Below, in pieces: positions 56,501-62,500 of a stretch of DNA of 64,000 bases. The stretch is from Bugula neritina (Eukaryota > Animalia > Bryozoa), in contig OZ037768.1 of the NCBI GenBank assembly GCA_964035545.1, positions 868,001-932,000 of the forward strand. Direction: 5' to 3'. The notes below the pieces were generated by a model. It searched no databases, had not been told where the DNA came from, and worked only from the letters and a program-made list of their open reading frames with translations. The stretch's first letter is position 1. Every line of letters begins with the position of its first letter. The translations under genes and the position numbers were made by a program.

Positions 56501-59500
56501 TTTGTCTTTCCTTCTTAATAGTATATTTATATATAATTGTGTATCACACAGTAACTGTAATACCCATCCGAAGTTCCTAACGCTCAAAATAAAATAAACA
56601 AGTTTTCTTGCATTCTCTCACCTTGAATTCAAAACAGCTACTGGAATTATGAGCACCATTTAGCTTCACATTTACCATTTAATGACAGTTGATACCACAT
56701 TGATGAAATTTTTTGCTGGCCATATGAACTGATTTAATCGTTTTTCTTTATTTTTCTTCTCTATAAGATGTTTTCATATCCATTTTATAGTGTAACAGTT
56801 CCACAGTAATGAATTATGTCATTGTTTATTATGTCTCATCTTCAAACTGACTCTTTGTTAGTCACCAGCACAGTTGTTCATCTCACAGTCATATTAAATT
56901 TCTAGCACATTGAGTAGCTGTAGGCATGTGTAGCTCATGGAGTAGCTGTAGGCATGTGTAGCACATGGAGTAGCTGTAGGCATGTGTAGCACATGGAGTA
57001 GCTGTAGGCATGTGTAGCTCATGGAGTAGCTGTAGGCACGTGTAGCTCATGGAGTAGCTGTAGGCATGTGAAGCACGGAAAGCCTTTAGATTCTCAGGAA
57101 TTTTAGTCCAGACAATAATTTGATTAAAAGATAGTTGTCTGTGTTTATGCTCAGCATAGAAAAGACCCAAGGTTAAAATTGCAGTAGAAAATTGGTGGTG
57201 AAATTTTCCTTTTTGATTGCATCGTGTAAATAATATTATAAACATACAGTATAGTCTGATTGTGCTCAGCAATAAAACTGTTGGTTTCTGTATATCTAGG
57301 GAGTTGCCTTCTTTATTGTCCAGTTTCCATTCTTTTTACTCGTTTATTCAAACTATAACATGCATTGTCTCTCTCTGTATCTATAGCTGACAAAGGTTTG
57401 TTATTAAATAATAGTAGTGATTACACTGCTACCAGTTAGACTCATAGTAGTACTAGTAGTGATTACACTGCTACTAGTTAGACTCATAGTAATACTAGTA
57501 GTGATTACACTGCTACTAGTTAGACTCATGGTAGTACTAGTAGTGATTACACTGCTATTAGTTAGACTCATATTAGTACTAGTAGTTGAGAGTATAGTTT
57601 TCACACCTACAGTTGAAAATGATGTCATCTAGCTGTTAGTGAAAACAGTTGAAACACTCACTACTATGATCATACTACTTACTAATAGCACGCCATTCAT
57701 ATTCATTTTGATTGCATTTCATAACTGAGCTACTGTTAACAACATATTTGCTTACTACGAGTAATTGACTGATTTTATTAGAAATATTTTTATTAAATTT
57801 AGCCATAAGCTCTGTGTTATTGCTTTAGTAGTCCACAAATGTTGTTTAGTATATATTTTGTTTTGATCTCATCTAATTATTTGCTAGAATATATTATTTA
57901 CTTTTACTTTTGAAATCAGAGTTATTTGTTGAGATTTGACTGTTTTGGAAACTGCTGTATATCAACAAATGACAACCGTGTGTAACTTTTGAAATATTTT
58001 ATACTACTATAAAAAAGATAAATTGTTGAAACGGTTGAAACTGCATACGGATAGATACGCTATTCCAATGACTCATTGTAACCAGTGCCGTGAAAGTTGT
58101 TAAAATTAGCTGAGGCTTCATCTCCGGAATGTAAACCCACCTGGCATAGACTTATGCTTAGTGTTTTCCACAAATGTTGTGTTTTTTATTTCATGAGCAT
58201 AAAGTAAAACTGTTGGTAGTTTGAAGAATTGGTTTTATAATTTGTAAGATTGTTGGAAATACTTTACCTACAGCTCTGGACTCATACTACATTAATTGTC
58301 TAATATTTCTACTGGTAAATTGTAGTCAATATAAAGTGTTTGACTTTCTATTTATTGATTATGTGTGGGAGTTATGTTCTTTTTTAATATCCCAATGTTC
58401 AAATAATTAGTGTGGCAAGGTTGCAATGAAGTATTTCAAATGTGACCAATACAGGATTTTCAAAATGCTTATATTATACTATTTATATTTTTATTTTACT
58501 ATTAATTACTTGAAATACTATTGGTTGCTTATTTTACTACTGATATGCTTATATTACTACTGATATGCTTATATTACTACTGATATGCTTATATTACTAC
58601 TGATATGCTTATATTACTACTGATATGCTTATATTACTACTGATATGCTTATTTTACTACTAGTATGCTTATATTACTACTGATATGCTTATATTACTGC
58701 TGATATGCTTATATTACTACTGATATGCTTATATTACTACTGATATGCTTATATTACTACTGATATGCTTATATTACTACTGATATGCTTATATTACTAC
58801 TGATATGCTTATATTACTACTGATATGCTTATATTACTACTGATATGCTTATATTACTGCTGATATGCTTATATTACTACTGATATGCTTATATTACTAC
58901 TGATATGCTTATATTACTACTGATATGCTTATATTACTACTAGTATGCTTATATTACTACTGATATGCTTATATTACTGCTGATATGCTTATATTACTAC
59001 TGATATGCTTATATTACTACTGATATGCTTATATTACTACTGATATGCTTATATTACTACTGATATGCTTACATTACTGTTGGAGACACTCTTATCCAAA
59101 CTATGCTTATATTGTAAACAGGAACATGGACGTGGCCTTATGAGTATCAACTTTTTTCGCATGTCTCGCATTGGCCGTATTCTTCGGCTATTGCATCACG
59201 GAGAAGGCATCCGAAAACTGTTGTGGACATTTTTTAAATCCTTCCAGGTGACGTTTGGTGTGCCAGTTGTACCGGCAGGTGTTGATTCACCTCTCACCGA
59301 CTCCTCGTATCCTTAGGTGTTGTCTCCTCTGCACAATCATCTCTCAACTCCTAGTCTATACAAATAACCTCTATCTGGTCGTCTGATTGGTTCACCATTT
59401 CATATGATGTATCTGATTGGTTGTTGATATTGTATGTAGTTTACCATTTCCTGTTATAGTGTATATGATTTTAGCTTTCGTTTCTTTTTCGTAGTCGAAA

Positions 59501-62500
59501 AATGACAATAAAGGATTTAGTATCAACTTTTTCCGCTTATTCCGAGCCATGAGGCTGGTGAAGGTGCTAAGTAAGGGGGAAGGCATACGAACGTTACTCT
59601 GGACTTTTATCAAGTCTTTCCAGGTAAAGGATGTGCATGCTTCAAGCAATACTTCAACACTGCCCGGGTTACCATCTATCAGTTGTATATTACATCAGCC
59701 GCTGACAGTTGCATACCTAAAGTCAGCCAGTAAGACACTATTTATTCTGTAAATGAAAACTAACCTCCCAAGAGGAGAGTGGAAATCTTTCTGGGTACTC
59801 TCACCTCTTCAGTTGATATTTGATTTATCCACACAGCCTCTGTGTTGTGCAGCACTTTCACTTTCTTTCTATTTCAAATTACATTCTCTGTTGAAGTTTA
59901 TGCAAATTGGTTTGTTTTTGAGATACCATATTGAAGTTATGTTATGTTTGATATTGCTAGTACAGCATGTTTTGAGTTAATGTCTAAATTGTTATGGAAA
60001 TTATAATTCATGCTTATTTTTCTTTTTTATATTGTTAAATTCATTATATAGTTATTCACTTGGCTGTCACAATGCTCGTGAATACAATTTTACTGAATAG
60101 TTTGTAAGTTGGAAACTGCTTTCTCTAATCAATATCATGTTCCTTCACTACAGTGAGACTGCAAGTCTTCCAGACCAAATAATGACATGCCTGTTGTTTT
60201 ATAGGCGCTGCCATATGTAGCACTGCTGATAGTAATGCTCTTCTTCATATTCGCTGTCATTGGCATGCAGGTGAGTCTACATTACTAGGCAGCATTGTAT
60301 TGGTAAGGTATCTTCATTGGTCAAGTAGGAACTGGTTGTTATGAGTCATAGATGAGTTAGTACTAGTCATAGATGAGTTAGTACTAGTCATAGATGAGTT
60401 AGTACTAGTCATAGATGAGTTAGTACTAGTCATAGATGAGTTAGTACTAGTCATAGATGAGTTAGTACTAGTCATAGATGAGTTAGTACTAGTCATAGAT
60501 GAGTTAGTACTAGTCATAGATGAGTTGGTACTAGTCATAGATGAGTTAGTACTAGTCATAGATGAGTTAGTACTAGTCATAGATGAGTTAGTACTAGTCA
60601 TAGATGAGTTAGTGTGAATAGATCTAATAACATGACACTAGTTTAGACAGATTATGCAAGACTGTGAAATCTGCTCATATACAGATATTAACAGTATATA
60701 AATATAAATAATATATAAATATAAATAATATATAAATATAAATAATATATAAATATAAATAACATATAAATATAAATATCAAGAATGATTTTGTTGAATT
60801 TGCAGATTTTTGGGAAAATTCGACTGGATCCTGAGAAGGAGATATGGAGGAATAACAATTTCCAGACGTTTCCACAGGCCATCCTGGTGCTGTTTCGATC
60901 AGCCACAGGAGAGGCCTGGCAGAACGTAATGTTGGCCTGTAGTCACTTGGAGGGTGTCGTATGCAATAAGGATTCTGATTCATTCCAGATTGAAGACCCA
61001 GAGGCCATCTGCGGAACTTTTTTTGCTGTTCCTTACTTTCTCACTTTCTATATGCTCTGTTCGTTTCTGGTGCGTATCCTAGTCTTGGCTTCATGTCCAG
61101 CAATTGCTTGAATATAGCAACTCATGCGTGTGTTCTTCTATCATTTGAATGTTCTTTCTGTTGCATTAGATCATCAACTTGTTTGTGGCAGTCATCATGG
61201 ATAACTTTGACTATCTGACACGTGATTGGTCAATCCTTGGACCTCATCATTTGGACGAGTTTGTGAGGTTGTGGGCGGAGTATGACCCTGATGCTAAGTA
61301 AGTCTTGTTTGTATCTTGTGTAACCATGGTAACAGAGCTCCTCACAATGGCTGATAAACTGATTCCAGCTATCTAAATCAAAAGTTAGCTGAGGTTGATT
61401 TGTGCTGGTTGCTATGACTACAAGCCTCGATGTATTTGCAGTGGGAGAATCAAACACCTGGATGTGGTTACGTTGCTCAGGAAAATCTCTCCTCCGCTGG
61501 GATTTGGCAAGCTCTGCCCTCACAGAGTAGCGTGTAAAGTAAGTTGTTGAGAGCACACAACTCCCTATTCTCTCTTGACAGCTTTGTGTGATGTTGAGAG
61601 CACACAACTCCCTATTCTCTCTTGACAGCTTTGTGTGATGTTGAGAGCACACAACTCCTTATTCTCTCTTGATATAGCTTTGTGTGATGTTGAGAGCACA
61701 CAACTCCTTATTCTCTCTTGATATAGCTTTGTGTGATGTTGAGAGCACACAACTCCTTATTCTCTCTTGATATAGCTTTGTGTGATGTTGAGAGCACACA
61801 ACTCCTTATTCTCTCTTGATATAGCTTTGTGTGATGTTGAGAGCACACAACTCCTTATTCTCTCTTGATATAGCTTTGTGTGATGTTGAGAGCACACAAC
61901 TCCTTATTCTCTCTTGATATAGCTTTGTGTGATGTTGAGAGCACACAACTCCTTATTCTCTCTTGATATAGCTTTGTGTGATGTTGAGAGCACACAACTC
62001 CCTATTCACTCTTGACAGCTTTGTGTGATGTTGAGAGCACACAACTCCTTATTCTCTCGACATAGCTTTGTGTGATGTTGAGAGCACACAACTCCCTATT
62101 CTCTCTTGACAGCTTTGTGTGATGTTGAGAGCACACAACTCCTTATTCACTCTTGATATAGCTTTGTGTGCTGCCAGGTAATATCTATCTTGTGAGAAAT
62201 CAAAGTACTGCTAATGTTTGCAGATCATACATTGTTATGTAGTAATAAGAATAACATTGTGTGAAATTAAATTTAAGTGTTTTAAATTAGCTTTGGTTCT
62301 CTAGTGTATTCTATATTCACACAGAGACTAGTGTCCATGAACATGCCCCTCAATAGTGACGGCACCGTCATGTTCAACGCCACGCTGTTTGCACTGGTAC
62401 GCACATCTCTTCGAGTGTACACTGAGGGAAATCTTGGTGAGTTGTGAATATACTTCTCTGATGGTACCACATTTCCAATAATCATGTCCTTGAATAATTT

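Follow-up and report, generated by a model that had tools for sequence, protein, structure and literature searches.

Introduction

Splicing of voltage-sensing domain (VSD) IV is an established feature of Cav1.2, in which it concerns exons 31/32 and 33. In Cav1.1 it concerns exon 29, which encodes the linker between the third and fourth transmembrane segments of domain IV (IVS3-S4 linker; PMC5330888). Exchange of an S4 segment through mutually exclusive exons has been described for Drosophila cacophony, a Cav2 gene, whose IS4A and IS4B forms differ in activation voltage and of which IS4A is sparsely expressed (PMC11828482, PMC12370356). Insect sodium channels (Nav) carry mutually exclusive exons over IIIS3-IIIS4 (para k/l, booklouse 27A-D; PMC3805903), and the duplicated exons of invertebrate NALCN (exon 15a/b) and Cav3 (exon 12a/b) alter ion selectivity at the pore or turret (PMC4436565). 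Here we describe a Cav1 alpha-1 gene of the bryozoan Bugula neritina in which the exon for IVS4 and the S4-S5 linker is present in two tandem copies, a divergent upstream exon A and a canonical downstream exon B. The locus lies within positions 868,001 to 932,000 of contig OZ037768.1 (assembly GCA_964035545.1, forward strand), and this whole stretch of 64,000 nucleotides (nt) is referred to as the window.

The closest parallel is cacophony, where likewise tandem duplicated S4 exons of a calcium channel are found. IS4A and IS4B differ at 13 residues, A and B at 13 of the last 36; in both systems the charge count differs between the forms, one of which is dominant and the other sparse. However, the cacophony exons belong to domain I of an arthropod Cav2 channel and those described here to domain IV of a bryozoan Cav1 channel, with an independent origin, and the splicing and gating effects proven for cacophony are inferred for the bryozoan gene. 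The insect Nav exons are similar in that the alternatives cover an S4 and that the minor forms are restricted to stages or tissues. Unlike exon A, they belong to domain III of a sodium channel and include S3, and some copies are one residue apart. Thus, the A/B pair is not homologous to the cacophony or insect Nav exons, which belong to a different family, domain and phylum. Splicing in vertebrate Cav1 also tunes VSD IV of this channel family, but the change falls in the loop or in S3 and S4 stays as it is, whereas the bryozoan exons exchange S4 together with the S4-S5 linker. As in NALCN and Cav3, duplicated exons would provide two functional types from one invertebrate four-domain channel gene; conversely, the pore with its four glutamates (EEEE) is common to both bryozoan forms. 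A literature search, which left most subscription journals outside its reach, found nothing on bryozoan Cav splicing or on duplicated Cav1 IVS4 exons. Exons that swap an S4 are already known; the Cav1 domain IV case is apparently new, as we found no report of it.

Results

Two IVS4 exons in one Cav1 gene

The gene comprises four repeats with an EEEE selectivity filter and matches Cav1 best (best PDB hits Cav1.1-1.3), which identifies it as a Cav1 (L-type) alpha-1 gene. A Ca_chan_IQ domain was found at the orthologous locus L023 of a sibling lineage. Two intact phase 0-0 exons for IVS4 and the S4-S5 linker had been described in an earlier note on this DNA; their coordinates were confirmed (Table 1), and both have open frames throughout and are bounded by AG/GT. 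In a PDB search, the S4 of Cav1 domain IV was the best match for either exon (E = 1e-16 for B and 3e-9 for A). The flanks of exon A agree with Cav1 at 19 of 22 positions and with Nav at 6-7 of 22, and the Cav1 origin proposed for A is upheld by both results. Conversely, the proposal that an entire voltage sensor is exchanged was overstated, as the swap runs from the end of the S3-S4 loop through S4 and the S4-S5 linker and excludes S1-S3.

Over the last 36 residues, A and B have 23 in common, with 60% of the bases identical; codon identity is 83% at second and 39% at third positions. The differences are concentrated in S4, where 4 of 13 core residues are in common but none of the six that lie between the first four charges. 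The gating charges were thought to be kept in A. This is correct for four basic residues, the fourth of which has changed from Lys to Arg, but the inner basic residue (Lys in B, Arg in vertebrate Cav1) is His in A. The second His of A occupies an every-third position at which B has Ser. With Ser and Gly in place of Phe and Met, the S4 of exon A is a slimmer, less hydrophobic helix, the summed volume of the inter-charge side chains being 812 in A compared with 915 in B. Exon A also holds an invariant Met. Codon 32 of exon A (window 59215-59217) encodes Lys in the Bugula lineages and Thr in other lineages and in Cav1; Lys is also found in two Nav genes of this genome.

Conservation and origin of exon A

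Loci carrying exon A were supplied by a search of 1.84 billion representative proteins and by a metagenome scan. Among the 150 protein matches listed, three were of A type (94-100% identity) and the remainder canonical Cav1. The loci represent six lineages: the window, a sibling lineage (L009/L023, about 88-90% alike to the window overall), L010, L016-L019, L020 and L011/L021/L022. Judged by their sequences, the lineages other than the window are presumably bryozoans as well. Exon A stands upstream of B in all six, separated by 247-411 nt, and always comprises 126 nt with AG/GT borders and phase 0-0; the length of exon B varies between 41 and 43 codons across complete copies.

Of the 42 residues of exon A, 36 are invariant over the six lineages, including the whole S4 and both His residues. 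Varying columns are found at 36 of 42 third codon positions and at 4 of 42 second positions. Between distant lineages the proportion of synonymous differences (pS) is 0.60-0.96 and that of non-synonymous differences (pN) 0.04-0.06, and a codon model gave omega ~0.006 for A and ~0.010 for B, both rough values given the saturation of synonymous sites. Comparison of the window with the RNA/sibling lineage showed four differences in exon A, all synonymous (P 0.003-0.014). Introns cannot be aligned between distant lineages, and exon A is kept regardless. Orthologous copies with stops or lost splice sites, named in the earlier note as a finding that would refute its proposal, were not encountered in any of the six lineages (omega ~0.01). 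Both copies are under purifying selection as protein. An assembly artefact was ruled out by the recurrence of the A-B layout in independent assemblies and six lineages, and chance by the conservation of exon A in five further lineages.

In the phylogenetic tree the A copies are all united in a clade of their own (support 100), as are the B copies (support 99), which points to one duplication before the six lineages split. No second IVS4 copy was present in the outgroups examined, namely a bdelloid rotifer Cav1 locus and one 15.6-kb Cav1 locus, and no DNA copy of exon A was found elsewhere in the genome.

A second duplicated exon pair, encoding the IVS1-S2 loop and IVS2, was noted at window 55248-55358 and 55724-55834 (111 nt each, 81% protein identity). 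It is duplicated in the window, L023, L018 and L019 and single in L020 and L021; either it arose after the IVS4 duplication or the latter two have lost it. Combined with A and B, this pair could provide four versions of VSD IV.

RNA evidence and splice sites

The RNA evidence consists of assembled contigs from four runs of four studies; such contigs drop rare variants and give no levels. Exon B is joined to the IVS3 and IVS5 exons in contigs of all four runs, and B predominates in bulk RNA. In two runs, exon A is covered by an unspliced contig of lower depth that begins upstream of A, includes the A-B intron and reaches the start of B. Part of the A-B intron, again unspliced, was all that a third run provided. 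Between sibling lineages the A-B intron is the best-conserved local intron (95%, gap-free). The intron after B is 86% alike and gapped between the window and the RNA lineage, and the absence of contigs over it is uninformative on retention specific to the A-B intron. The donor of exon A is weaker than that of B in every lineage (GTGA or GTAG vs GTAA), and its acceptor has fewer pyrimidines in five of six. These weaker splice sites are consistent with a regulated minor exon.

Resemblance of exon A to Nav domain IV

Eight positions of the exon A S4 core are unlike typical Cav1. At four of them, in register, exon A agrees with two Nav genes of this genome, and at three with a third Nav gene. Of 50 S4 registers scanned, that of Nav domain IV matches the changed positions best, and no other has the Gly of exon A; the in-register likeness consists of Ile-Gly and Leu-Arg. 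The match at Gly is based on ungapped PDB alignments in which residues 11-40 of the exon A query correspond to 1618-1647 of Nav1.6 and 1624-1653 of Nav1.5. Substitutions at G1625 of Nav1.6 (G1625R) alter gating and inactivation (bioRxiv 10.1101/2023.12.04.569940). As Cav2 has Ala at this position, exon A may merely have returned to a small residue.

The core of exon A had been described as Nav-like on account of the motif RIGRILRL. It does match the vertebrate-type Nav motif as given in the earlier note. The Nav genes of this genome read RIGRVLRL or RVGRVLRL, with Val where exon A and the vertebrate-type motif have Ile, and to this extent the description does not apply to them. The S4 core agrees with the genome's own Nav genes at 7-8 of 13 positions and with Cav1 at 4-5 of 13, and the Nav-type sites are clustered. 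Still, exon A has four Arg and two His and is devoid of the outer Arg and inner Lys residues of Nav, i.e. it does not show the charges expected for descent from Nav. Codons are identical at 39 of 88 shared residues between A and B, as against 32 of 168 between A and the own Nav genes. Whole-exon scores to Nav (15-19 bits for the window exon A, 12-19 for exon B) place A no closer than B. Estimated from S4 composition, the probability of a chance likeness is 0.06-0.24 with the own Nav genes; with the vertebrate-type motif, which was picked post hoc, it is 0.0007. The Nav likeness appears real but local. With codons closer to those of B than to those of Nav, the additional Nav charges absent and the flanks of Cav1 type, convergence, as already proposed in the earlier note, seems likelier than transfer from Nav.

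The three Nav-type genes were located at G000:C1:14158035, C2:1676161 and C3:3620647. Two of them are identical over the IVS4 segment and both have Ala in the pore loop of domain IV, suggestive of duplicated Nav2-type channels.

Features of the locus and genome

Table 1. Coordinates of the Cav1 gene and of the features around the duplicated IVS4 exons (window positions)
Feature	Position	Strand	Remarks
Cav1 alpha-1 gene	~29509..63984, continues past 64000	+	tblastn exon map; pore glutamates E/E/E/E
Constitutive IVS3 exon, donor feeds A or B	56407..56490	+	phase 0; RNA loose ends at 59495 correspond to the end of the IVS3 exon
20-nt tandem array, 27.6 copies	58526..59078	+	ends 43 nt before A acceptor
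Exon A: divergent end of IVS3-S4 loop, IVS4, S4-S5 linker	59122..59247	+	126 nt, 42 codons, phase 0-0, AG/GT
S4 core of exon A, 13 codons from first Arg	59158..59196	+	identical in six lineages
Gly codon of exon A, aligned to Nav1.6 G1625 / Nav1.5 G1631	59173..59175	+	ungapped PDB coordinates; Met in Cav1, Ala in Cav2
His-His, inner end of exon A S4	59194..59199	+	invariant across six lineages
A-B intron	59248..59494	+	247 nt (other lineages 300-411 nt); contained in unspliced contigs of RNA runs
Exon B: canonical Cav1 IVS4 and S4-S5 linker	59495..59623	+	129 nt, 43 codons, phase 0-0, AG/GT; form spliced in RNA
Constitutive IVS5 exon	60205..60270	+	phase 0

The 20-nt array upstream of exon A is reduced to about two copies in the sibling lineage and is thus no conserved part of the locus. 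Its unit, in which CTGAT resembles a branch point, is similar to the final bases preceding the A acceptor. Between the IIIS3 and IIIS4 exons lie two candidate microexons of 30 nt each that are nearly identical (window 47837-47866 and 49236-49265); they encode the same peptide and keep the frame. Upstream of the Cav1 gene, window 9300-12300 holds exons of another gene on the minus strand, with armadillo- or ankyrin-like open frames.

Elsewhere in the genome, two separate Cav2-type genes were recognised by their IVS4 exons (G000:C7:4177299-4177403 and G000:C8:11276132-11276242); most invertebrates have one Cav2 gene. The assembly (216 Mb) includes a mitochondrial contig of 15,248 nt whose protein genes stand in the order published for the B. 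neritina mitochondrion, and the two Bugula-specific primers of that publication match with 0 and 2 mismatches (PMC2678162); the host is accordingly placed in the B. neritina complex. A full-length COX1 copy on a nuclear chromosome (G000:C6:11174072-11175412) is likely a nuclear mitochondrial insertion. The small contigs C214, C73 and C17 carry foreign COX1 genes, one of bacterial type without stops, showing that the assembly holds symbiont or contaminant contigs. The ESM Atlas returned generic Ion_trans clusters only.

Discussion

The data are best described by an old duplication of IVS4 that left B as the default and A as a constrained minor splice alternative with different gating, an account to which we assign a probability of about 0.75. 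As shown by the tree, the Cav1 IVS4 exon underwent a single tandem duplication in a bryozoan ancestor, before the six lineages split. Copy B retained the ancestral sequence and, as seen in RNA, serves as the default form, and copy A, after a sharp divergence in S4, has remained under strong purifying selection on its protein. We infer that a minority of transcripts, probably confined to a particular cell type or stage, carry A instead of B, because joint inclusion would result in two S4 in series and read-through is not conserved. Mutually exclusive use of A and B is accordingly a prediction, the A junctions being unseen in RNA contigs. By analogy with VSD IV of Cav1.1 and with IS4A/IS4B of cacophony, the A channel most likely differs in the voltage dependence or kinetics of activation or inactivation, and the Nav-like residues would be convergent solutions in a homologous helix. 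In Cav1.1, VSD IV splicing causes a shift of 30 mV (PMC5330888).

Several points weigh against this account. The junctions 56490>59122 and 59247>60205 are absent from the contigs of the four RNA runs, in which rare variants are dropped; the check proposed in the earlier note was thus positive for the B junctions in all four runs and negative for those of A. No spliced A-containing protein was found among candidates of 23-73 and 82-262 amino acids or among the 50% cluster representatives. Given the loss of rare variants from contigs and the limits on length and clustering, both are weak negatives. A mechanism of exclusion was not found either: both exons keep the frame, and the intron of 247-411 nt is long enough. 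Crude scans for conserved intron pairing or inverted repeats and for Nova, PTB, Rbfox and MBNL motifs gave nothing consistent. Moreover, VSD IV adds little to the gating of Cav1.2 (PMC5330888, PMC6096772). As it sets the voltage dependence of Cav1.1 but matters little in Cav1.2, the functional effect may be small.

It appears improbable that A is used otherwise, as the first coding exon of a short internal transcript, as the terminal exon of a truncated channel, or jointly with B. Such uses could account for the observation that in three runs the only contigs of this region continue into the beginning of B without splicing, two of them covering A and ending about 60-200 nt upstream of it, and for the invariant Met within A. 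The joint 59247>59495 of A with B was not seen in the contigs of the four runs either, where A itself never appeared spliced. Still, the acceptor, the donor and the length of 126 nt are fixed in all lineages. Read-through beyond the A donor meets a stop after 2-41 codons and is not conserved, and with both exons included two S4 helices would follow one another, inverting the topology downstream. The lack of spliced A and its weaker splice sites could also be read as marks of a dead or merely regulatory pseudo-exon. The probability of this is close to nil, as omega ~0.01 across six lineages with saturated synonymous sites is not sustainable without translation in frame, a value that effectively refutes it. 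A different origin of the S4 core, by ectopic conversion from a sodium-channel gene, would make A a Cav1/Nav mosaic. The mosaic pattern is real, with clustered Nav-type sites in a Nav-like core between Cav1-like flanks, and Nav domain IV was the best of the 50 registers and the sole one with Gly. Yet Val of the own Nav genes is Ile in the tract, which is directly preceded by Met-Ser instead of Val-Phe; its codons retain no memory of Nav, no DNA match exists elsewhere in the genome, and likeness to the own Nav genes has a chance P of 0.06-0.24. The Cav1 flanks inform on the origin of the exon only, and synonymous saturation bars a direct test. It is implausible that paralogues so distant would undergo conversion over about 20 nt, and we consider this origin highly improbable.

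Instead of a simple voltage shift, selection in A could conceivably have favoured ligand sensing, with His-His responding to Zn2+ or to protons on the cytoplasmic side. Neither His varies over the six lineages; one is in the every-third charge register, where Nav has Lys, and the other stands in place of the inner basic residue found in Cav1. Histidines in S4 can titrate (PMC13661669). However, the pair, being at the cytoplasmic end, is probably not within the focused field, and conservation does not single it out since the whole S4 core is equally invariant; on balance ligand sensing is unlikely. A wider and similarly doubtful reading is that bryozoan Cav1 splices in a second IVS4 that combines convergent Nav features (Gly) with a titratable His-His. 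If true, this would provide an L-type channel of a specific cell type with, say, fast VSD IV-coupled inactivation or control by protons or zinc.

Conclusions

The IVS4 segment of Cav1 is nearly invariant: among the matches listed in the protein search, all 140 non-A Cav1 segments are within one or two residues of one consensus. According to a 2018 review the role of IVS4 in Cav1.2 is unknown, since most multi-charge mutants do not function (PMC6096772). Exon A represents a natural, long-selected rewrite of IVS4 in an otherwise identical channel. The A/B pair thereby constitutes a ready-made test of the role of VSD IV in L-type channels and of the contribution of the Nav domain IV Gly, and adds an independent further case of an invertebrate channel gene diversified through duplication of an S4 exon.

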